A stretch of 41,546 nucleotides of DNA, from assembly GCA_020536535.1 (NCBI GenBank), contig JAHLWZ010000935.1, positions 1 through 41,546 on the forward strand, read 5' to 3'. The DNA is from Pelomyxa schiedti (lineage: Eukaryota; Protista; Evosea). Numbering within the stretch: the stretch's first letter is position 1; each line of letters opens with the position of its first letter. The notes under the pieces were generated by a model that saw only the letters and a program-made list of their open reading frames with translations, ran no database searches and was not told the DNA's origin. Both the position numbers and the translations under genes were made by a program. This document shows positions 1-17,730 of this stretch, piece by piece.

Positions 1-1496
1 AGCTGTCACCAATTTGCTGAGTATGATGATACTCACCAAAAGTTGGTTTGTGATTGTATTGTTAGTTGAAAAGCTGCTTACTCCAAATGGAGAAGCAGTA
101 TTTGTGGCTTCTATACGGGGGGACAACGACACACAATCGATGCACGGAGGGATTGAGTCGTCAGTGTTCAGAAAGAACTTGTAATGGTGTTGGCCTGGTG
201 GCAGTGACAGTCGCAATGATGGTGTCGGGTCGGTGTACCACCGATGAAACATACGGTGTCGCTTCCAGTTGTCAAAACTACATGCCAGTTCGACGGTGAC
301 ACACCCGTAGGTGTACGCACTTGGAGCTCGAATATCCACCGAACGCATATTTGATCAAGACATTCGAAGTTTCTCGGGTTTCGAAGAAGACGGGTTTGTC
401 GCGAAACAGCCTGGGTTGTTTCGTCCAAGAAATGCTCCGTGTTACTGCAGTCGATCCCTTCGACGTTGTCAGCCTCCTTGAGGCTCTCGGGAGTCCGCGC
501 TGGAGGAAGGCGGCCCGCTGGGTGGTGCAGCCGACACCATGCTTGCAGCCCAGGGGCACGGGCCCACCGGGGAGGCTGGTGGCAATATTACGTTGACCAC
601 GCACTGCGTTGCGGCAACACGGAGGTAATTTTGTTGAGAAAAAAACCTAGATACTGTGTGTATGCTGCTCTTTAAGAATTTTCTCACAGTGGGCACACCA
701 TGCAGCTTGCGGCATGGATGCACAGTCAATTTACAATACAAACAAGAGAGCCATAGAATGGATTTTATGCCGCAGTGGCCAGACCCCATTTTACCCACAG
801 ACGACCTGTGGGCTCGCGCGATCATCGATGCAATCAAGAGGAAGTGGTATGACCTGCTTCTTGTTGTTGTGTCAAGGATGTATTCGAGAGACCCTGAATC
901 TCATCGGGGCGAGATGCAGAAGTGCCTTGAAACATTTTGCAAGGACAGCAGAACGGATATGATAGACTTAAAGAAACATTGACCTCGGAGCACTGGTACG
1001 GATGACGATGACGGATCGGGAAACGCTGAAATTCGTCTGCCACAGGTTCTGCTTTCAGATCTCAGGCATGAGCTGGATCTTATTCCCAAACTTTCAGGTG
1101 CGTGGCAGCAAATTGAGCTTTGCTCTCCTCCTCGACATCCCTCTTGATGTTGTCAGATACCTGGTGGACACCTGCCATATCCCAATGGCTAGCGGTCTGA
1201 TGAGGAGCCCTGGTGACCTTCATCCGAATGGCCCCTCTGCTATGCCCGTCTACAGAAGGCTTGAGAATCCGGAATTTGTCGAGAAACTGATTTGGTACGT
1301 GCACTCCTCACACCATTGCGCCGCGGTATCAGTTGTACCGTCCGTGGCACACTGGATACCGGACCCGAATCTGACCAAGATTTTGGGTGGCACAGCCACA
1401 TCGAGATTGAGAAATTTGCACGACACCGAGGAGTGTCTGAGCTGTACTCAATTTTGGACAGCGTACAACGAAGCCCGGTGCACACCAGCTGAATAA
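1..1496 (+). pseudogene. Degenerate or partial gene with ankyrin-like fragments
   Basis: Protein-like segments sit in different frames: ...YYVDHALRCGNTE before a gtaatt donor (~625), ORF 656-982, and ORF 1002-1496 containing DIPLDVVRYLVDTCHIP. ORF 656-982 (..MIDL) joins RNIDLGALVRMTMTDRET only through a 1-nt shift near 970. The 5' part is stop-interrupted and may be cut by the window edge. Confidence 0.35.
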
Positions 1497-1929
1497 AATA
1501 ATCAATTAAGGCACAGCCACACCCACACTCTGTGACGATGTGTTTTAATTTCCTGTAAAAAAAAAAACCCCTCCGCACGCGAAGATGCGGGTTGCGACGC
1601 CAGGCTACGGGTTCGTGCACACTCGTCGTGATGCAGATCGTGTACTGCCCCCCGTGAGCAGTCTTTTTCTTTCTTTGACTTGTACACCCTTTTTTTTTTT
1701 TTTTTTTTTGACACATTGAAATTAAACAAGGTGACGACCGCAGAAGGTGAGCCATCGACGTCAAATGGTCGCACGGAGCAAGTCACAGCTCAAGGAGGCG
1801 TGAAATCAGACATCTCAGTTTTTCGTGATGGATTCTTCTCGTGCATTAGGCGGCTTCCTTTCAAATGGGTATCATGATTTGGGCTCTTTTCCCCCTTTTT
1901 TTTTTCACACTGTTTAGCCCGAAGAAGTA

Positions 1930-4900
1930 ATGGTCGTTGTGTGTGACCAGAACTCTTTCATGCTCGAACTGGATTCACATAATTCACCGCCGATCGTGTA
2001 TGTGGACTCTCCTTCAGCGTCTATGCTTGCATCTCTTGCTGCGGGCTCCCCAAAGTTCTTTGAAACCATTTGCATGCTTGGAGCAACGCAAATGGCTGCC
2101 CTGATGACACATGGTTCCCCCAGAGTGGCCATGCACCTTGTAGCCTCTGCTTGGGAAGTTTTGGGTAAGCCAGTGCACGATCAAGTACTTGAGGGCATGC
2201 AAAAACTGTCTGGAGCGTGCCCCTTTGATGCAGGTCACGTGTGGGAGACTTTCCTTAGGAATGCTGCAGGGGTAACAGAAGCAGAGGTAACATTGCCCCA
2301 ATACCAATCCAACTCTAAAAAAAAACCTAAGAGGAGCTCCCAGGATGCTGCCTACGAGAAACGTGACAAGCTTGTCTCGTGGTTGCTTGCCAACCAGCTG
2401 ATAGAACTGCCTTACAACCACACTGCAATGTGCAATGCACTTCATAGTGATCTTTCAAGGAGACCAACCATGTGCCACTCTGTGCTTTCAAAATATGATG
2501 TTGCCTGTGAGCTAAGAAATGTTATGCGAGTTTCAAACTTCATTCGGGTAAGCCTCTCTTGTAGTCATATTTAAATCACATGACCGAAATAAGGAAGACT
2601 TAATCCCTAGAACAACTGCAGCCACCCCCATATTGCTTGTGGGTCGCGAGAGCCGTGCTTTTGGGAATCAAGCCTATCTTATGGCCTCCAGCAAACTCGT
2701 TCTCCCTGACGAAAACCTAATCTCCTCTGCCCAAACTCTTTTCAACATTTCGGATGGTGCAGAATTGAGGAAGGATCTCTTTTCAGTCATACCACCTAAT
2801 AACAACACTGCATTCAATCTGGTAGTTAAGCTGACTGATCTTTTGGTTCACCTTGGTCCAGGTGTGGGACGGCTGAAATCACTTGTTTCTAGGAAGGAAC
2901 CACACCCCTTGACACAGTACTGTGGTGTATTGCAGACCCTTCACCACCAGTTGGAGATTATACACACAGAATCCCGTATTATTCTAGATAAGGAAGTTTC
3001 ACGTGTGGTATGTGGCATTTCCCCACCTCTATGGCTTTACCTGACTGAATTCAGGTCCTGAGCTTGACAGATTATGCTTTTCGAACCTTGCAAGATTGTC
3101 AGCATCTCCAGGACTATCGTAACTCACTTATGTTACTGAAACAGAGGATGGACAGATATTCAGGGATCAGTGGTGATTTTGCTTCTGCAATTACCTCAGT
3201 GGAGGATTTTCTGCCCTTACAAAAGACAATAAGCCCGGCATTTAGTGTATTGTTGCAGCGCATTTCTCCCAATGCTGCTGAGAAATTCAAAGCTAATGAA
3301 ATTGAGGACAAACCAGAGCAAGAACCTGCCCTCAGAAAACTCGTACGTATTGGCGGGGATCGTGTGTACATGTCAGCATCATTTGAATGGATTTCAGAGG
3401 CAACTGATATTGTTGAAGCAGTACCCCTTTTCATATATGAACACACCGTGGAAAGGGAGGGCATCTCCAAGACTGAATTTCATGTAGACCAAGAGGGTCT
3501 GGAGGTTTGCTCATACTCCTTCCATTAGCCTCAATTTCCCTGGTTCACAAATCGCAGGCTACTGTGCGGCAGATGGCTCCTAACCTGGCCGAGAATATCA
3601 GACGAATGTTATCTTCACTCCATGTATCTCTTGCCCGTGAAGTTGTGTGCCATGCAGTTTCTGTGTCCCTGGAACAGTTGAAACTATTGGTCACTGAGAA
3701 TGGTCTTGACATAGACTCTGCTGTGTTGACTGCCTTAAAAGAATGCCGGCAGCGTGAAGTCTCTTTGGTTGCCCTATGGATTTCCATTCAATTTGAGAAG
3801 AGGGTGGAAGAGATTGAGGAGTACGTGGAACAACAGTGGTGCACAAATAACTATGTGGATCTTCTTTCTGCCACTCGTTCGGTTTTGGTGCAACCCAATG
3901 CCAAACTGCTGAGTCCATCTTACTCCACTGCTTGTGAAAAACTTGTTGCCCAAGTTTGCAATAGTGAAATATCCAATGATTCTACTGGAATATCTAAGTA
4001 CACTCCAATTCTGTGGAAGCGACAAAGACCACTACCTGCGTTTCACCTTCTTACCACAGAGGCACCTGGATTGATGGAGGCCTTCATACAAACAGTGCTA
4101 GAAGAACAAATGGCACTAGAAAACATTATTCTAGCCTATGGCCTTGAGTCAGAAGTAAAACTGCGCTCTGAGAAGTATGCAGGCAAGCTGCTGCACATCA
4201 GTCGTCACATAATATCTGAATTTGGCTATGAACCTCTTCTCAAGCAATACTTAGCAAAGCAGAACTGTTCTGAAGCAACCGCGTCCTTTACACTCATCCA
4301 AGAGCACACAAGAGTTCAAGAAGAGGTAGCAATACTAGCAGTTCTAGTTGATACTGCCTTTTCCCTCTCTGTAACAGACATGAACTCAGAAAACTGGATC
4401 ACAGAATGCATCTCTTGGATTGAAAGTGAGTGCACCAAGTTAAAATTACAGGAGCCCTCCTTGATGTTAGAGATAGAGTGCATTTCTTTACAACATGTTT
4501 TAGCTAATAACTTGGTGGATCCTGTCTTTTCTGAACTAAATGAAGCAAGTGGGAGCAAGCCTTCTGCATCTGCCGTGCGCATGGTGGTGATGCGGTCCCC
4601 TGAATTTTTAATGGAATTTAAAAGCAACATTTCATGGCAGTTACGGAGGCATCTTCTGCATTCTCTAGACAAAAGACATCCAGAGCTTTGTCTGGAGCGA
4701 CATGCTAAGCACTATATCCGGAACAGAACAGTGCTCACAAGAACATTAGCTGCACGTGAATTGATAAAGGAGAAAGGCCTTGCTCCACTGATGCTCTCTC
4801 CCCTCTATGCCTATGGTAGTGGAGTTGTGGATCAAAGAGATGGGCATGCAGTCCCTGTTGGACGCAGGAAGAGGTTTCTTCCATATGAAAATAATTAACA

Positions 4901-7900
4901 CTGAGCATCCTTGTGACCTCAAACAAGATATCACTTGATATATGCCCCAAGCAGAGTGAATCTAGGTAAGGGTGAACTGATGTCAGTGCAACAGTGGCCT
5001 CAGTGGGCTGGCGTGAGTGATCCCCTTGCTGCTTCTCATGCCAAGCACATGTATGAGCATATAAACTATCACCCCGTGATACACACAATTCGTGAAACTG
5101 AGAATCTAAAGGTGAGTGAAAATCAATGGACAGCATTGATTCGCGCCGTACGCAATTGTCAGGCCTTGTTTGTAGACAGAGAGGGAGTGGGAGATATAGA
5201 GCTACTGGAATACGAATATGCACAGAGGGATGGCCTAGCTGCAGCTTCTCGTAAGCTGAAGGAAAATTATTCGGCAGGGCCAACTGCTGGATATTGCATT
5301 CCAAAGGACTTACTTTTCAAAATGTTTGTGGTTACATTCCAGGATGAGTCTAAGCTTGAACAAATTGGTGTCTCTGCACATCTCCATGCTTCAACTCTCA
5401 GTACCCTTCATGATATATTGGACAGGAGACCAGACTTTCGTAGTGTTGCTGAATGGGAAAAATGGGCTGCAACACTTTTACAACCCGAGTCAATAAACTC
5501 CCGGCTCCTAGGAAGCAATTTGCAAACCTCTCATAGTATTCAGCGATTTAATTCTTGTCTTGGTAATACTTCCATTGTCTATCACTTACCCAAGCTGAGC
5601 AATTTGCTGCCTACTGTTGGTGTTCCCAACCCAAGGACACAACATGGACGTGATCTAGCCGCAGTTGTGTGGAGTTCTTGGGCAGAAAAGAAGATTAGTC
5701 TTGGCGGAGAACAAGTAAACCGATCACTTGTATTTGGATTTGTAAGAGGTATATTTCGTGCTGCAAGAATGGCTCGAAGTCTTAATCCATTGGTTCCCGT
5801 TGCTCAAGATGAGCGGCTTCATATCCATGTTTTTGGGACTTACAAAGGGGATGAAGATTATCCTGCACCACCTGATGTTCGGTTTGCAATGTCAATGCGT
5901 TTGTTCATGATACTCAGTGGTCATAGTCATGAAGTTGCTTTGTGCCTTGATGAAGAGGGTCAAGTTATAGCTCACCTACTCACACATGGCCTCAAGTTGC
6001 AGTCACAAAACGCAATGGATAAACGAGCTGCCAGCATGCTAGCTTCTCACTTTGTTGGAAAGAATGAATTTGATTCCAATGAAGACGCGAGGGTGATTGA
6101 GGCATTGATGAAAGAATTTCCACCAATGCCAAGCGTTGCAGACATTACCATTACGAGTGTACCTGGTGTCACCACGGAAGATTTACTTGGATTTAATGCT
6201 GAAACGAAGGCTCTTCTGTCCAATGACGCAAAAAGAGCCTTGGAGCTTCTGAAGACTTATGGAATTAATACTGAACAAATGAGGGCAAATGCTCGATTGC
6301 ACAAAAAGTTTCCAGAAGAATGGGCTCCTCTAAATAAACTCTCCACACAAAAAATACAGTTCCTCAAGGAAGAAGTGGGGTATTCAATACACCCCCTGGT
6401 TTTACAGTTACGTGGGCCTGGGTCAAATTTTAGGTTGGACTTACAGGCACAAGATATAGTCTTATTCTGCTGTCCCCATATGCAGGTTGGTGTGGAACTC
6501 TCCATGGTTTTTTTGTTTCTAATGGAGTTTGAAAGATGATGTCTCTTACTCCAACAGAGCTACGGGACCTTATGCTCCTTGGCAACCCTACAAGCGCCCT
6601 TGTTGCCCTCGACTTCGTAGTTCAGGGAAAAAAGAGGGTGTGGTGTGATAGAGATGTAATGAGCTGGTATGCTGCATGTCGGGGAATAGATGCGCAAGGG
6701 AATGAAATTGAAAATTGGGATGAAAGGGAAATTCGCGGACGTAGAGGCTCATATCTTGCGTTTGGTAAAGGCATATTCGATGTTGAATCATCCCTTGGCA
6801 TGATATTATATGATCGTGTTGGCTGCCAAGAAAAACGGGCCATAAAGCTTTACAAAGCCTTAGAGAATGTGGTAAATAGCAAGCCCCAAGCATACGAAGA
6901 ATTCCTGTCGATTTTCACAGAGGAATTCTCTATTGCCAAGTCCTCCTCTGTAAGACAAGAAATGGAGTGGGCATGTGACTATGAGCAACAAGTGATCCTC
7001 AAGGGCAGGTTTCAACAACGAGACACTATAATACGACAAGTACTAGAAAATATTGTGTATGGAATGCCGGCTAAAAGTTTTGGAGCTTTAGAGTGGCTCG
7101 CAACTGGTGGAATGTACCTCTTAAATGGCCTTCCTGCCTTAAAGCAGCAAAGGATTCTTGAGATTTGCTTTAAAGCTATCTCTGTTATGAATGGGAAGCC
7201 TCTGATAAGCAACTCTGATAGCGATAAAATATCGCACTTGATTCGCCCCCAGTCAATTGGAGCGTCATTCAAGTGGGCAGAGCAAAAAGGAGAAATGTTT
7301 TCCGTTAAAGCATCTGAACAAGTTAAAGAAACTGCCGTTGCGCGCCGACGGGCATTAATAGCTGCTAGTCGGATGCAAGCAACTGCCGAGCAGCTTTCCC
7401 AAGGCGTTTTATCTTGTTCTAACCTACATTTTCCTGAAACACCCCATCAACTACTACAATTTGCATTATCCACTACACGAGAAATTGTGGAATCCCTTAG
7501 GAATTCGTCACGTTCCTTTAGTGCAGCTTCACTTGTTGGAAAACTGTTGGGCCTGTGTCCAGCTGCAATTGACTCAATAACTGATCTTCTGCCACTTCCC
7601 CATAAAACATTGGTGAAAACATACACCAAACAGCTGACTGACGAATCTGGGTTAAAAATTGAAGTGTGGAAAAAGTTCAGTGGCACTTACGAGGACCAAG
7701 GACTTCTTTCAGAGATGTTTGATGCATGCAGCACCAGTTCTGAAAACGAAGAACTTGTGCTATCTCTATGTGAAATTCTCTACACGGCATTACTAATGTG
7801 GAAGACTTTACCCTTTCTCACCACAACCACTGACAATGTTGGGAATGTCCATCTTTGGCGGGCACTGGCCGAGTTTTTTGCTGAAACCATTGATGACCAT

Positions 7901-10900
7901 TACAGCGAGTACAATCCATGGTATTTGGACCATAAAAGATGCTCTCACTGGCACAGATTGTATGATACCTTGGGGTTTCTGAAGCCGGAAACCAGTGAAA
8001 TCCTTTACCAACTGGCCTGGAAGCATCATCGATATATGTATTTCTATGTGAGAACACTGATACTCGAGCACACTGCATTCAGTGCAATTCCGAGCACAGA
8101 GGCGGAGGTTTTACTTGGAGATGTGGTCTTAGGCAATTCACTGAGTGGTGAAGAAGACGTGGTCCGTGTGGTTGGCATTGGTGCTGGTCATCCTCCAGGC
8201 TATTTTGAAACACTGTGGCGAGCGTATAACCACCTCCGTGAGTTTGCCTTTATGGCAAATGATGGCTTTTCGTTGCCTGTTGTGGCTTGTGGGGTGGATC
8301 CCCAAACCCTAAATTGCACTTCACGTGTAAATCACGTGTTTCTATATCCTGTTGGTCGCACTCATATCTCAAGAGCTCTATCTGAAGGGCCAACAATGGG
8401 GGCCAATTTACTAGTAACCCGCGACGGTTGCATAAACTCTCTTCCTAAAAGTGAGGATCACCGCCCACTTGTGTGTATCAGTGACGCCCACACATGGCTC
8501 AGATTTGACGAGGCCGTGATGCTTCTTCATACTTCACGCAATATTACTCAGGAGCAAGCTCGAGACTACTTACTAGCATCGAACTATAACACAAGCAAGG
8601 GGGTAAGGTTTGCAATTACATTTTCCGACCCTGTGTGGGCTGGATCAGTATGCTGCTTCCACCATCATCGACTAGAAAAAGAGGTGTTCACAACCTGTGG
8701 CTATCCATCAACGGACAAATCCAGGGTACTTTTCGAATTGACATATAATAAATCACTCTATCCATCTATCTACACCGTGCCCGGGAGTGGAGTTGAACTT
8801 CCTCCAGAAATTGATTGGATGTTAGAGCATACAACGAAATTTGGGAGCAATGACGCAGAGGCAATTGTGGCAATTTCACAAAGGTTACGAGAATTTGCAC
8901 AGAGACATTTTTCAATCATCGCGAAAGGAGCTGCTGAATCCGGTGCAAGGAATTTACAAAGATTTGACCTTGTCAATCGTAACTCTGGTGTCGTTGACGA
9001 ACAACAACTTGTGGCTGCCAGTAAGTTTGTATACACTATAAGCAAGACTCAGAATGTAACCATTCAGAGAGCTATCATTACTACACCTTTTTCATGGATG
9101 GATTCCCAGGCAATTGAAAGGTTTGTGGAAAGACAACAAACAGAATGGGGTGCTGCAGTCCAATTACATGTTCACCCTAAAGATGCTGTATATGGTACCC
9201 TTCGTGTGATCATGTCGTGTGGAATGCCAAACAGTTGCAATCTACACGATCCGGCCAATTGGACCCCTTCACACATTCTTTATTTATGCAGCACCCAGGT
9301 GGCCACAAACGTGGGCCGCCAGGGTACTCTTGAAGTTCTAGACCCGAAGTAAGTTTTTTTTTTGTGTAGGTTGTTCTAAACCACCTCAAATAGGTTTATT
9401 CAACCTGCTTTCCGTGAATCTTTCATTACTGGACTGGTTGATGCCGCACGAAATTCTATGGTAGCTGTTTCACGGTTTGGGCACCATTACTGGCACAACT
9501 GCAGTACCGTTGAAGGCGTTACTCTACCGTCTTACCATGAGCTTCATCCTGAAGACCCCGAGTGTGATTCGAGTGGAATTCCCTACTGGTGGCCTCGATA
9601 CCTTATGCTGGATTTCTTACCGGAACCAATATTTGCTACACAAGATGGGAAAATACTTCATGATGTACAAATTCTGGATGTGTGCCCTGTATGCATTGCT
9701 GATTTTTTCCTTGGTCATTAACCTCTACCAGGGGAGGACCCTTATTGCAACTCAGACCCATTTTGTGATACAGACCCCTGGTTGTCCCTCCCCCTTTATT
9801 CCTCGCATTGCAGGTTTTCGATTTTGGCTACTTGAGCCAAATGTAGGTATAGGATTATGGCCAAATTATTGGAAGAGAGAGGTGTGCCTTGAACAAGAGA
9901 TGTGCGTCCAACAACATCGAGAAACGAACTGGGGGAATGTGGGTGTCAGTGACAGAATCGTTTTGTCAAACTTCTTGCTTGCTGGAGCAGCTTTCATGAA
10001 GTCACGGGGCATTTCCGTTCCTCCCTGTATCCCGGTTAGGAACTCGGAAAGCACATCATCTCAACAACTTTCCACAAATGTTCAAGACACAAAAGGTCTC
10101 TTCCTTTCAGCACTACAAGCCTTACATGAGCAACTACCTCATGTAAAAGAAGTAGGACCCCTCGAATTTAGTATCCTCCTGGTTGAACTGGCCTACCTTT
10201 ATTTCAAGGAACAGTTCTCTACACAGAAAATTAGCAATTCTCACACCCTCGAGCTCGTTAAGAGGTGGGTTGAGTCTGAGGAGGCAATCTCTCAAATTTT
10301 TGAACCTACAGTCTCAAAACTGCCAATTCCCATCGCATTAAGCAAAAGTGCTCTCTTGTCCTTCTTAGGAGACCCAGTCTACACATGCAGGATAGCAGAG
10401 ATTGTACTTGACCGGTTTAAGAGTGTACTTTTAACTCCCCCAACTGCACTCTTACCTCATTCATGTGAGTCTATGGGCCAAAGCACAACATTTTCCAAGC
10501 CCAACATTGTGGCGGTTGTTACTGGCAAAAGGTCACTTATGTCTCACCACCTTTTTCCCTGGTGCATGCGTCAGAGCACAGACACGTTAGTTATAGGCGT
10601 TCATACAGACTGGCTAACACCAGACGCAAAAGCATCCAGAATCATAACCTATGATCCTGCAAAGTCCCTCTTTATTGAACTGGCACTTGCGGCACCCCTT
10701 AGATTTACTCATACCTATGTTGTTGAGCTGCCTGCAAGCACAGAACTCATCGATCTCACGACGTTGTGCACCTGGTTTGATAGTGTGAATATAAAATCTA
10801 TCAACCCGTTATCCAGTGCCATAGAGCGTGCAGCTGATAAAACGTGGCTAATGAAGAACGCATCGTTGTTCAGCATTCCAGTCCCACTTTCTGGAGTAGT

Positions 10901-11590
10901 AAGTAAGGCTGCCGATATCGGCCGTGTAATACAAGAGCTTTCCTCATTATCTCGGAGCGAGGGAATTATCATCAAAGCCGCAAAGGGAACAACCGAGGGA
11001 GCAACTGTGCAATGGTTTGCTTCTACCGACGCGGCAAGTGCCTCCAACTACGCTGAGAGATTACTTTCACGAGGGGATATTATTATTAGCAAGTATGAAG
11101 GATCAGTAACCTATCAGGGCTGCCCGCTTGTTTTGCGCTTCAATGTTGCCTGCACCGGAACCGAGTGGCACACAACATGTTCTCCAGTCATTGGTGCCAA
11201 AGGGGAAAAGGTAGCAGTGCTGGGAAAAATTCCGGCTCAGCCAACAATGTCAACAGTACTGCGGAACTTGCAAGTCGCAAACACCGGCACAACAGTTTCA
11301 ATTACAGAGACGGAGTTCAACAGCCTTACCAACATCGCAAAGCTAACTGCTAACAAGGTATCTATCTACCCTAGCCCTATCACCCTTCCTAATTATGAGC
11401 ACAGATAAGCCTTCCACTTGTTGGTATTGATGTAGTTTTGGTTCACACCGAGGCAGGAATACAAGGACGCGTACTAGAAGCCAATGCCAGGCCCGGCAGC
11501 CTCATTTTCGCCGAGACAGTTCAGTTCACACCCCAAGGAATAGTATCTTCACCTGCACAAGCAATACCGCCATCATTTTTCCTGTCGTAG
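1930..11590 (+). CDS. Giant multidomain enzyme (~3091 aa): nucleotide-sugar dehydrogenase-like region plus two ATP-grasp domains
   Basis: Nine exons joined by phase-consistent GT-AG introns: 1930-2547, 2594-3007, 3055-3504, 3558-4873, 4928-6485, 6536-9348, 9394-9688, 9732-11357, 11405-11590 (9276 nt). Dehydrogenase motifs: YAPSRVNLG, ETENLKVSEN, AGPTAGYCIPKD, GTYKGD..DVR, DIVLFCCPH, YLAFGKG. ATP-grasp 1: IIAKGAAESGARN, LMLDFL, LLEPNVG. ATP-grasp 2: AADKTWL, IIIKAAKGTTEG, VGIDVV, VLEANARPG. Confidence 0.85.
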
Positions 11591-12188: not shown

Positions 12189-13658
12189 CTACAAGAAGAA
12201 GGAGAACGTGTTCACCAGCTCCAGGTAAATGTAGGGAACGCAGATCTTGCACAACTCAATCCCAGAGGGAGCTTCATTTACAATTATGCTGTCACGCCTC
12301 ACGTGAAGTAAAAGCCCGGCCTCACCCCACACGCAGTTGCAACAGCCAACGTGGTCAACTGTCATCAACGCACTTGTGGGAGTGTTGCAGTCCCAGATTT
12401 CGAACGAGTATGGGTGAGACACGCAATACAACCTGTCACTCAGTCCGGAGATGACGACCTCGTAGTTGCACGTTGAGCAATAATGGGATGAATTGACCAC
12501 TGATGACGACGACTCTGGCAGCTGGAGCACAATGTTCTCGTTGTGGAATTTTACCAAAACTATGAATGTGCGCTGGTGCGATTCTGTCCGCAGAGTAACC
12601 AGCGACGAAAACTCGTAAAGCTGGTATTTCGCGCCAGACTTGACAAATCTTCCTGATGATGGGAGGTAGCACTTGGTGCAAGTGATCGGCTTCAGCGAAT
12701 TAGAAGACCACGTGTGCAGCAGGTTTAAAACAGTCAACTCAATGCAATTCACCTCGTTCCTGGAAGCAATAACTGCCTCATCATCATGCCAGTGAATGAA
12801 GAAGAATTCACATCTGCCAAACTGACCCGGCGCTGAAATTACCCGGCTTATGGGAGGTGGTATCCCGTCATTTTCCTCTGGGTCAGTAGTACATAGGTTC
12901 GCGATAATGGCCTCCCCCTTCGAGTATTTGTAGATAACAAGCCACTTGTGATTCACCTGATAGGAAGGTAATCCAAGAATCCTTCTTCCCTCCCACAGCA
13001 ATGCCCGATTCTTGGAATTTCTCCACCAGTCAACATTCACTTCACTTCCGGCGCGATCGCCGCACTCGTGTGGCTCCACTGGCTTCCTATCTCTTTGGTA
13101 GAACGCTTTCCCACAAAGGAATCTCTCGACCAGGTGAGCGCGGTTTATAGCAATCACCTCGCTAGCTTCGCACTTCTTCCACAGGCTCGTGAGCTTCCCC
13201 ATCACTCCCAGGGTCGCCATCGACACCCCAAACGTGATCAATGTTTCCTCGTAGTGGCAAGGCGGCACTGACATCACACTCACACAGAACAGCCTCACGC
13301 GGCGCCCGCCGCCGTTCCCATAATCGCCGTTGTCACCGTCGCCATCACCAGTGTCGTTCACCCAGTCCCACACCAGCCTCAGGGCCAGGCGAAAATTTTC
13401 ACTTGGCAGCCAGCCACACCTCGGGTGCGAAATCAAGCACAGAGCCGCGAATTGCAACTGCAAATCCAGAGTCGGTATCACTTTCTCCTCGGTTTCCTCA
13501 GGGTGGTAGCACCGCGCGTGGGGCGACAGAACGGCGCGCTCGTGCTTCGTCCGCTTCTTCCTCCTCCCATAATTGGCGTTGGCGCTCGGCGGCCGCTTCG
13601 CCCCCGCCTCGGTCGTCATTTTGGCCCCTGCGCCGGTGGCGTCCTTGTCGTACTCCAT
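12189..13658 (-). CDS. Intronless lineage-specific hypothetical protein (489 aa)
   Basis: Uninterrupted ORF from an ATG at 13658 preceded by an A-run. It has a basic NLS-like N-terminus (RRKKRTK), the motif LQFAALCLISHPRCG, and a beta-rich C-terminus (VNHKWLV, FEIWDCN). This resembles a Pelomyxa expanded family as I recall it. Confidence 0.75.
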   Translation of the reverse strand: MEYDKDATGAGAKMTTEAGAKRPPSANANYGRRKKRTKHERAVLSPHARCYHPEETEEKVIPTLDLQLQFAALCLISHPRCGWLPSENFRLALRLVWDWVNDTGDGDGDNGDYGNGGGRRVRLFCVSVMSVPPCHYEETLITFGVSMATLGVMGKLTSLWKKCEASEVIAINRAHLVERFLCGKAFYQRDRKPVEPHECGDRAGSEVNVDWWRNSKNRALLWEGRRILGLPSYQVNHKWLVIYKYSKGEAIIANLCTTDPEENDGIPPPISRVISAPGQFGRCEFFFIHWHDDEAVIASRNEVNCIELTVLNLLHTWSSNSLKPITCTKCYLPSSGRFVKSGAKYQLYEFSSLVTLRTESHQRTFIVLVKFHNENIVLQLPESSSSVVNSSHYCSTCNYEVVISGLSDRLYCVSHPYSFEIWDCNTPTSALMTVDHVGCCNCVWGEAGLLLHVRRDSIIVNEAPSGIELCKICVPYIYLELVNTFSFFL

Positions 13659-13814
13659 TTTTTTAACACAGTGCTGTAGTGACACATTTCCCCTTCTTTT
13701 TTTTTTTTTGTGTTGTCCAAGCGGCTCTTTTTTTTTTTTTGTGTCTCATCAGATTTGGAAGTGCACTGTGAGGGTTCTGTACAATTGAGAGGTTCTATCT
13801 ATCAGGTCACCATG

Positions 13815-15589: not shown

Positions 15590-17730
15590 TTAGTGACCGT
15601 CAAGTGCGGAAAAGTCATATAAACGGGACGGAGGACCAGGACAAATGCGCCTAACACACCAACCTTTGTGTTCAAGCCAATCACGAACACTGGAGGCATG
15701 TGATGTAAGGGTGTAAACGGCCACATTCCCTCCTGTTAGTCAGAGGTTAATATTGGTATAGATGTTGGGGTTTTTTTGGGGGGGTAAGTATCTACCCATT
15801 CCTGCAGCAGCAACTCTCATGGCGGCTATATTAGGGAAGTCAGCGGAAAGCTGTGAGGCAGCCTCGTCAATGTCAGGGATGCTTCTTTGGAAGGCACCAA
15901 CTTGATAGGCAAGGTTGGCTCCAGAAGCTGAATTTGGGTTGAGGGTGCAGTACAGTAATTATAGTATTGTATTTAAAAACGTTACTTAGCCACTGTTTCA
16001 AAACTGTGTCAGTGGGCTTTACATCCACCCTTGGTGAGGTTGCCCAGGGTGTTGGTGCGAAGGATTTTCTGTAGTCTATCAGTGCACGGTCTCCATCATG
16101 AGATAATGATACAAGATGCAAAACTTCAGGGAGGTTGTTGTGCTCCAGGGCTGAGAGGTATTGCAACCCTCTGAAGCACTTTATTTGCAGTCGGTATCAT
16201 AAAGAATTACCTCTCAATTTCTGAGAGACCATACAGTGCAATTTGTCGGAAGGTAATTTGTTCCTTTCAATTTAGGTTTTCAACAATGAAAAACAAAGAC
16301 AAAAAACCTCGGGGATGAGCTGGAGTAGGGAGTAAATTGTGCTAAACATTTGTGAGCGAGCTTCGCCACTTTGCACGTATTGCTGCCTGTCATCTTGCAA
16401 TAATGAGCATAACAGAGGCCTAGATAAAATAAGTGTCTCGAAAAGGAAAGAGAATGAGTCGACTTCTCATGGCGGCGCAAAGCAGTGAGGATAACCTCAA
16501 CTTGAGTCTGTGACAAACCGACTTTGGCAGTTTGATCTATGTTACTCAGTCCAGAAACAATCATCTCAGTGGCAGGGACATAGGATAATTGCATGGTCTT
16601 CAGGTGTTGGAAGGTTTTGAAGAGGTACTGGAAGATCATTTGTATATACCCGTTTTGCCCACTCCTGTATTAACGTCGCTGTTTCTCTCGGAATGCACAT
16701 GTGCTGGCATAGCCATGGCAACGCTTCTGAGGTTGAAAGCCGTGGGATCTTGAGTTGATAAGTTCAATGAGGGGACAAATGGACACACATTTGTATTAGC
16801 CATGAATACAGTTAAACTATTTGGTAGTGCCACTGTTCTCAAAAATTCTTCAGGGAAGGATCCAATTACAGCAACTTGCCCTTCTTGTGCAAATAACTGA
16901 GCTGCTTTATCTGCAGCCCCTGCTTTTTTCCCAAGGTAGTACTCACCAAAGTCGACCTACAAAAAGATGAATTACTTTTACAACTTTCTAGAGTCACCTC
17001 AAATGTGATTGTACCTGGGATAGCTGTTGCAATGTCAAACCCAAGTCAAGTAATGCATTGATGCCCACTGAAAGTGCAGTAGTGAGTGCAGAGGACGATG
17101 CCATCCCAACACACCAATGCAAAGCTAACGAACCACTGGAGCTAAAAAAGGCATTGATTCCTTTTCCTCCCTCAGCACAACGCTGACCAAGAGACGGGCA
17201 ACTCACATTGAGCAGATATGCCAATGCAGCTTTGCAGTAACTGTGCCAGTCATCAGGATTCCAGAAAACCCTGCCAGGCTCAGGCCTACCAACCATCAAC
17301 TATGTGATGTTAGTATGGTACAAAAAACTAAAAAGAATTCACCTCTTGTATGCCAACAGAGCCTGAAGGGAAAGATGCAGAGGAGTTGTAAAAGTGGAAC
17401 AAACCGTCCTGAGAGCACTGTACCACAGCCACAATGCACTCCTGAGTGGCAGCATTGATAGTGAATCCTCCCAAACCAGGGAAGTCAGTGTGTCCCTTGT
17501 TTAATTAGCATTGGAGTTAATTACCATTATTAGAACTAACAACTAAAAGCACAACGAACCATGAAAATTCTGTCCCTCCCAGGAGCCACAACCACAACAA
17601 CAGGCTCGTCAGGCACAAAGACGTCCAGAGGCACTCCCATAATGGCGTCGCACACGGCTGACAAAACACTGGATCCGTGCTCGTGAGTGTGCTTCTGCGT
17701 GGCCTCTTGCCACTGGCGCAACGACCTCAT
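15590..17730 (-). CDS. Divergent GHMP-family sugar kinase (galactokinase-like), multi-exon
   Basis: Spliced motifs in the expected order: VVAPGRDRIFM|GHTDFPGLGGFTINAA (cf. APGRVNLIGEHTDY), GMASSSAL (ATP-binding loop), GEYYLGKKAGAADK (cf. GxMDQ), MRVAAAGMGGNV (cf. ARxxGAGxGG), and C-terminal PGPPSRL. Stop at 15590-15592. Confidence 0.85.

Follow-up and report, generated by a model that had tools for sequence, protein, structure and literature searches.

A stretched nucleotide-sugar dehydrogenase-like module in a giant multidomain protein of Pelomyxa schiedti

The Pelo_14398 gene of Pelomyxa schiedti (KAH3744193.1; hereafter P0008) encodes a protein of 3268 residues that is annotated as hypothetical. 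It occupies positions 1002..11590 on the forward strand of contig JAHLWZ010000935.1, of which the whole 41,546-nucleotide stretch (the window; ∼45% G+C, with few long open frames) was analysed. We show that the product of one part of this gene (2630..6865; P0008 residues 396–1739, 1344 residues including six insertions), here called the module, truly belongs to the UDP-glucose/GDP-mannose dehydrogenase superfamily (PF03721 + PF00984 + PF03720; TIGR03026). P0008 was retrieved by a profile search built from exon 8 and maps to window positions 1002–11587 with a 100% tblastn match; a TAG stop codon follows at 11588–11590. The gene has 12 exons and is single-copy in the 52-Mb Pelomyxa assembly, and exact reconstruction gives eleven introns of 43–54 nucleotides and one of 303 nucleotides, all of them GT-AG. 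The stretch that carries the dehydrogenase motifs consists of parts of exons 5–9 in three frames and is not a single open reading frame; the four introns inside it (47–54 nucleotides, GT-AG) are given below with the segments that they interrupt or precede. Analyses that span exons used the public protein, and window-based searches went exon by exon. The joint between positions 3006 and 3054 is present in a single-cell transcriptome contig that stops at the next exon border, and across the other junctions of the stretch the rotifer and dictyostelid homologues continue straight through. Contigs from three more runs, made on the same sample within the same study, contain the complete stretch as well; these may be the source data and so are not independent. 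Residues 1–326 (window 1002–2376; exons 1–3 and the start of exon 4) hold the sole long intron, of 303 nucleotides. A phmmer search with residues 1–330 gave no match in any other family member retrieved, and the N-terminal ∼326 residues are either an extension specific to this lineage or a questionable piece of the gene model.

An earlier note on this DNA, made from the sequence alone, had picked out nine motifs of a nucleotide-sugar dehydrogenase stretched about threefold by helical-looking inserts. All nine lie at the coordinates that it gave and together cover P0008 residues 396–1708, which is 1313 residues compared with 418 in the closest solved enzyme, PDB entry 4r16; the module as a whole has 3.2 times the length of 4r16. 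The six insertions were modelled or mapped as helical and total ∼830 residues. The module opens with strand β1, a remodelled nucleotide loop, helix αA and strand β2 (2630..2704; residues 396–420, 25 residues; ILLVGRESRAFGNQAYLMASSKLVL). The first motif, ILLVGRESRAFG (2630–2665), starts with ILLVGR and sits at the position of GxGxxG; in the predicted Pelomyxa model described below, β1, αA and β2 correspond to a strand at model residues 77–82, a helix at 85–95 and a strand at 99–101. Insertion 1 (2705..3222; residues 421–577, 157 residues) places long helices between β2 and β3 and holds the intron at 3008–3054. It is followed by β3–β4 and a β-hairpin (3223..3489; residues 578–666, 89 residues), which contain the ATDIVEAVP motif (3400–3426). 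Insertion 2 (3490..4031; residues 667–829, 163 residues) is helical, holds the intron at 3505–3557 and is mostly missing in the compact bacterial members P0034, P0058, P0063 and P0068 (profile positions 332–461). Strand β5 and helix αE (4038..4136; residues 832–864, 33 residues; AFHLLTTEAPGLMEAFIQTVL...) include the codons of Thr837 and Thr838 (4053–4058); the β5 motif FHLLTTEAPG, with its invariant TT, had been missed by the earlier note. Insertion 3 (4137..4859; residues 865–1105, 241 residues) is large and helical and lies between αE and β6. An intron at 4874–4927 lies just upstream of β6 and the P-S-R motif (4929..4967; residues 1111–1123, 13 residues; YHLIYAPSRVNLG), where YAPSRVNLG begins at 4941 and the Ser1117 codon (4947–4949) stands at the Glu position of PER/NPEF.

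The central, dimerisation-type domain (4968..5348; residues 1124–1250, 127 residues) carries ETENLKVSEN from 5094 and the GPTAGYCIPKD segment with the catalytic cysteine. The codons of its key residues are at 5109–5111 (Lys1171), 5121–5123 (Asn1175), 5295–5297 (Cys1233) and 5307–5309 (Asp1237). Insertion 4 and a linker helix (5349..5783; residues 1251–1349, 99 residues, and 1350–1395, 46 residues) lead into the C-terminal Rossmann-like domain (5820..6865; residues 1408–1739, 332 residues). This domain begins with HIHVFGTYKG...DVR (FGTYKGDEDYPAPPDVR), which includes the GTYKG..DVR motif (5835–5882), the Lys1416 codon (5844–5846), Asp1426 and Arg1428. Two insertions fall inside it, insertion 5 (5919–6137; residues 1441–1513, 73 residues) and insertion 6 (6168–6449; residues 1524–1617, 94 residues), and it also carries DIVLFCCPH (6453–6479), an intron (6486–6535), ALVALD and YLAFGKG (6752–6772).

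A family profile search returned 73 cluster representatives, 52 of them with E ≤ 1e-10. Most family members are 2000–8000 residues long, with the domain near residue 900–1200; those with names come from Polysphondylium, Synstelium and Brachionus, from metagenome-assembled genomes (MAGs) of Omnitrophota and of an unclassified bacterium, and from a Lokiarchaeota MAG. Several are labelled ‘galactokinase’ owing to a fused GHMP kinase, and the rotifer relatives, found by a word search, share ∼50% identity. A search of the PDB with a profile built from 21 sequences, covering the central and C-terminal parts, gave matches to 3g79 (an NDP-GalNAcA dehydrogenase; E = 1.4e-14), 4r16 (a UDP-ManNAc dehydrogenase; E = 6e-14, in three collinear stretches), 3ojl (Cap5O; E = 3e-9) and 4xr9 (CalS8; E = 7e-7). 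The stretches of 4r16 pair PSRV with PERV, the K..EN helix, GG.C.PKD, YK...D.R and GAD.vv...H in the same way as the earlier note had paired the motifs; in stretches 2 and 3, YKeevqDvRfS lies opposite YKGGTDDTRNS and GaDvv..H opposite GADAIVIATDH. A five-sequence profile gave one match in the PDB, to a UDP-glucose 6-dehydrogenase (UGDH) at the correct position, with a weak E of 0.34; a phmmer search of exons 8 and 9 against the PDB gave nothing useful. Two bacterial homologues, P0021 and P0025, score above the PF00984 gathering threshold (27.4 and 32.2 bits compared with 25.4), and bacterial members match TIGR03026 with E = 1e-13, the coverage being only of model positions 141–280. Language-model features suggested PF00984 with a score of 0.81, which we use as a lead only. 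The family match is far beyond a chance resemblance of motifs, and it places the module closest to the WecC/Cap5O/CalS8 branch.

Structures were predicted with AlphaFold without templates. The whole module of P0034, a compact bacterial relative, was modelled from a 53-sequence alignment (1104 residues) with a predicted local distance difference test score (pLDDT) of 92.9 and a predicted template-modelling score (pTM) of 0.89. Foldseek matches this model to 4r16 over ∼860 alignment columns (E = 5e-9, target template-modelling score 0.78), and VIA-align superposes the two with a Z score of 23.3 and a root-mean-square deviation (r.m.s.d.) of 2.0 Å for 414 of 418 residues, spanning model residues 67–1080. 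The Pelomyxa model, of P0008 residues 320–1250 (931 residues, 49 sequences), has a pLDDT of 89.7 and a pTM of 0.88. Its VIA-align match to CalS8 has a Z score of 21.2 and an r.m.s.d. of 2.7 Å for 263 residues (chain 7–293), and that to 4r16 has a Z score of 20.4 and begins at model residue 77, equivalent to Ile396, where ILLVGR starts. With Foldseek the Pelomyxa model gives only local matches of the central domain (∼140 columns, E ∼0.07), as its alignment is interrupted by the insertions, whereas VIA-align recovers the full match. When the ESM Atlas, an independent library, was searched by shape, all ten of the matches listed were nucleotide-sugar dehydrogenases. In these models the scattered segments rejoin: the Rossmann fold reassembles around the ∼830 inserted residues, and all three domains (N-terminal Rossmann, central helical and C-terminal Rossmann-like) are present in the predicted structures. 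The dehydrogenase identity proposed in the earlier note is thus borne out by the profile matches to the PDB (E as low as 1.4e-14) and by structural Z scores of 20–23.

Conservation was assessed over ∼50 sequences with ∼22% mean column identity. The invariant or nearly invariant positions are Cys1233, Lys1236, Lys1171, Glu1174, Asn1175, Ser1117–Arg1118, Tyr1415–Lys1416, Asp1426 and Arg1428, and Asp1237 is also counted among the invariant ones. Alignments A3 and A6 have Cys1233 in every sequence and A5 has it in nearly all; it lies opposite the GGHC.PKD of 3g79 and 4r16. Lys1171, Glu1174 and Asn1175 of ETENLKVSEN align with the aEv.K..EN of the solved enzymes, and Tyr1415, Lys1416, Asp1426 and Arg1428 with YKGGTDDTRNS of 4r16 and YKGDVDDIRES of Cap5O. 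Thr837 and Thr838 are identical in 49 of 49 sequences and lie at the end of the modelled strand β5; from the motif and the strand position, this strand is probably the counterpart of E-S-T-v-P-G-T, which contains Thr131 of the human enzyme. Glu642 and Pro645 on β4 are conserved in the family as well.

Two sites depart from the ordinary enzymes. The water-activating glutamate of N-P-E-F/x-P-E-R (Glu161 in human UGDH) is absent across the family, with serine in its place: Ser1117 of YAPSRV, itself invariant or nearly so, aligns opposite the Glu of aPERV in 3g79 and Cap5O. Glu161 and Thr131 of the human enzyme have both been mutated, as the titles of PDB entries 3khu (Glu161Gln with a trapped thiohemiacetal) and 3itk (Thr131Ala) record. 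The second site is the nucleotide loop, which reads G-R-x-[S/G]-R-A-F, with Arg401 in 41 of 44 sequences, Ser or Gly at position 403 in 42, Arg404 in 43 and Ala405 in 41. Because this replacement motif is itself strongly conserved, we regard the glycine loop as remodelled and not decayed. The earlier note was therefore right that the catalytic Cys and Lys are kept, that the Glu of xPER is altered and that the nicotinamide adenine dinucleotide (NAD) loop departs from GxGxxG, but its description of that loop as degenerate does not hold. Its suggestion of changed cofactor use or chemistry is a reasonable reading of the sequence.

Downstream of the module, P0008 residues 1768–2757 (window 6950–10007) form a strongly conserved region of ∼1000 residues that is present in nearly all family members and in which numerous Gly, Arg, His, Trp and Asp positions do not vary; a further C-terminal domain is present in some members. 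Profile and Pfam scans of the ∼1000-residue region gave no Pfam or PDB hit. Its last third contains strings that resemble ATP-grasp proteins (KGAAESGARN, ATNVGRGGTLE and LLEPNVGIGLW). The C-terminal domains give sub-threshold matches to ATPgrasp_YheCD (E = 0.002, in one homologue) and ATPgrasp_ST (E = 0.03–0.13, in three), and language-model features gave ATP-grasp leads for the downstream parts at 0.75–0.76.

Other genes of sugar metabolism accompany the giant gene and its relatives. On the reverse strand of the window, 4 kb beyond the end of the giant gene, positions 15632..17580 hold a GHMP kinase (galactokinase-like) gene, whose introns are short. Next to the bacterial homologue P0011, a giant protein with a GHMP part is encoded; the Pelomyxa kinase aligns collinearly with this part and matches it better than anything else in the Pelomyxa genome. 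P0017, P0034 and P0083 carry a fused GHMP kinase of their own. The gene of P0083 (3438 residues; JGI contig L006, positions 1–30317) is preceded by genes for a ROK protein, a GH94 phosphorylase, a PGM/PMM protein and a 565-residue protein without a Pfam family, and is followed by one for a 1243-residue GATase_6+SIS (GlmS-like) protein. A bacterial Logan contig (L012, positions 1–34205) has three giant genes in a row on one strand, which encode a SIS/DUF4954/GMPPB_C protein of more than 3342 residues, the homologue P0011 itself (4734 residues) and a GHMP/PGM_PMM/ROK protein of more than 3375 residues; this trio looks like a whole sugar-activation pathway in the form of giant fusion proteins. 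The upstream neighbour of P0011, a SIS/DUF4954/GMPPB_C giant protein, gave no match in the Pelomyxa genome when used as the query, and the genomic context of P0025 contains no informative operon. A frame of 498 residues (window 12192–13685, reverse strand) lies between the giant gene and the GHMP gene. This frame and open reading frames of 150–500 residues at 13.8, 21.3, 24.7, 32.1, 38.6 and 40.1 kb have no Pfam match at E ≤ 0.01.

The giant collinear proteins of this family come mostly from bacteria (Omnitrophota and others), with one Lokiarchaeota MAG among the sources. In a tree of the module, which was built with the quick method FastTree, rooted at the midpoint and is indicative only, Pelomyxa, a rotifer-like sequence and the dictyostelids form one clade with a support of 85. 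This eukaryotic clade is sister to P0012 (Omnitrophota), P0011 and P0013, inside the bacterial radiation. With their introns and the matching GHMP kinase, the eukaryotic copies look like candidates for a transfer in which anaerobic amoebae and other eukaryotes took up a section of a bacterial gene cluster.

Taken together, we consider it likely that P0008 contains a stretched WecC-like dehydrogenase fold that is catalytically alive, with an altered cofactor site and an altered last step. Catalytic activity is predicted from the invariant Cys1233, Lys1171, Asn1175, Thr837–Thr838, Asp1237 and Tyr-Lys1416...Asp-x-Arg. The module would bind a nucleotide sugar or phosphosugar and oxidise its primary alcohol through a thiohemiacetal and a thioester on Cys1233. 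The hydride acceptor would sit at the rebuilt G-R-x-[S/G]-R-A-F loop, where a small residue would cap αA between two flanking conserved arginines; we read this loop as a phosphate site in use, possibly of NADP-like or otherwise altered specificity. Release of the acyl-enzyme would probably differ from ordinary hydrolysis, because the glutamate that activates water is replaced by serine, and it may be coupled to the ∼1000-residue region and to the weakly ATP-grasp-like C-terminal domain.

Several results weigh against this interpretation. No Pfam family was found on any Pelomyxa exon or on P0008 (the cut-offs for exons and P0008 being E ≤ 1 and E ≤ 0.01), and the sole match in a six-frame PF00984 scan of the Pelomyxa genome is a canonical UGDH on another contig. 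Thus, of the alignment to the family anticipated by the earlier note, the match of the family profile to solved enzymes stands, but the Pelomyxa sequence by itself fails the Pfam models; as the bacterial homologues pass PF00984, the homology is therefore transitive. A profile of the N-terminal ∼750 residues (alignment A4) found no dehydrogenase in the PDB, only coiled-coil noise, so the N-terminal domain is assigned from the predicted structure. For the C-terminal domain of the Pelomyxa protein, the assignment comes from its alignment to the modelled homologue and from stretches 2 and 3 of the 4r16 profile match, which make such a domain probable. The second and third glycines of GxGxxG are absent from the loop, and the position after β2 has no conserved acid but is variable (Asp in 8, Arg in 6, Thr in 5 and Ser in 5 sequences). 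Finally, the ATP-grasp identity of the downstream domains is suggested by sub-threshold matches only. The canonical Pelomyxa UGDH (contig C872, 18436–19766) is intron-bearing and has the ordinary motifs GAGYVG...VADLN, EKSTVPV and SSPEF, with a β5 that reads VVEKSTVPVRTADVIETVL; since Pelomyxa has this separate enzyme, the giant module is not the housekeeping one.

A more specific form of this scheme, which we put forward as a speculative proposal, is a non-hydrolytic, channelled variant of UGDH. An acyl group derived from an NDP-sugar would be loaded on Cys1233, and the thioester would be passed to an amine, to phosphate or to the ATP-grasp-like domain; the product would be a sugar-acid conjugate or polymer, and the cluster of giant sugar-metabolism enzymes would have moved with the GHMP kinase from Omnitrophota-like bacteria to amoebae and rotifers. 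If true, the module would provide the first example of a channelled UGDH mechanism that does not end in hydrolysis. Somewhat less probable, in our view, is that the same fold runs reductively or phosphorolytically, with an acyl phosphate made by the ATP-grasp-like domain passing to a Cys1233 thioester that NAD(P)H reduces, or with release by phosphate as in GAPDH. The hydrolytic glutamate would not be needed in that direction, which would fit its change to serine while Cys, Lys and Asn stay, and the conserved arginines at the nucleotide loop and in P-S-R and the weak ATP-grasp signals downstream also speak for it. However, an ATP-grasp identity is not established, an arginine after the Glu position is normal in the ‘PER’ of WecC-type enzymes too, and the kinase, mutase and pyrophosphorylase-like neighbours fit a supply of nucleoside diphosphate (NDP) sugar for oxidation. 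To our knowledge, no member of the superfamily works reductively or phosphorolytically.

A pseudoenzyme, in which the fold would serve the rest of the giant protein as a scaffold or as a sensor of sugar nucleotides, appears slightly more doubtful again. The loss of GxGxxG, of the conserved acid after β2 and of the hydrolytic glutamate together would suit such a role, as would huge helical insertions that could serve assembly and the retention of a separate canonical UGDH by Pelomyxa. Against this, Cys, Lys, Asn, Thr-Thr, Tyr-Lys and Asp-x-Arg have stayed invariant across so divergent an alignment, and the replacement loop is strongly conserved, unlike a decaying site. A chance resemblance, bacterial contamination, mis-assembly or a wrong gene model, to which the lack of a Pfam hit in the Pelomyxa sequence and the bacterial MAG proteins among its closest relatives might have pointed, is highly improbable and already contradicted by profile E values of 1e-14 and Z scores of 20–23 over whole chains, by eleven short GT-AG introns, one of them confirmed in an RNA contig, by the recovery of the whole stretch in the three further runs (subject to their possible identity with the source data), by collinear homologues in dictyostelids and rotifers and by the single copy in the genome.

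We found no description of this family in a full-text literature search and in word look-ups in preprints on giant genes of Omnitrophota. The catalytically alive, stretched dehydrogenase that we favour offers a first entry point to a family whose giant proteins are annotated as hypothetical or by their fused kinase only, and its eukaryotic copies are invisible to Pfam. It illustrates the tolerance of the fold, with a 418-residue architecture kept at ∼2 Å despite 600–900 residues inserted at six loops, and the change of Glu to Ser together with the arginine-rich loop makes a clear and testable prediction of altered chemistry.

Among known systems, the WecC-type enzymes are the nearest. WecC/Cap5O (4r16 and 3ojl) and 3g79 are the best profile matches (E from 1e-14 to 3e-9) and have the same domain order, and 4r16 is also the best structural match of the P0034 homologue (Z = 23.3; 20.4 for Pelomyxa). 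The shared motifs are the P-x-R strand, the x-E-x-x-K-x-x-E-N helix, G-G-x-C-x-P-K-D, Y/F-K...D-x-R and G-A-D-x-v-v-x-x-x-H. Unlike these enzymes, the module is ∼3.2 times longer owing to its six helical insertions, is embedded in a multidomain protein of 3268 residues and falls below the Pfam thresholds; it has Ser for the Glu of P-E-R, G-R-x-[S/G]-R-A-F for GxGxxG and no conserved acid after β2, and the Arg of the C-terminal I-G-R motif is not conserved. CalS8, the TDP-glucose dehydrogenase of calicheamicin biosynthesis (4xr9 and 4xrr), is the top structural match of the Pelomyxa model, but it is a stand-alone enzyme of 456 residues with a normal NAD loop that has been co-crystallised with NAD and TDP-glucose. 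Human UGDH and its bacterial counterparts Ugd and Cj1441 (2q3e, 3khu and 7kws) share the fold, with Z scores of 16–20. The counterparts of Cys276, Lys220, Asn224 and Asp280 of human UGDH are kept in the module, and probably also that of Thr131, whereas the counterpart of Glu161 is serine. A precedent for an extra domain in such an enzyme is a CBS-bearing nucleotide-sugar dehydrogenase from an ESM Atlas cluster (574 residues; PF00984 + PF03721 + PF00571), in which the addition is one small known domain, in contrast to the six large helical insertions and the rebuilt cofactor loop of the module.

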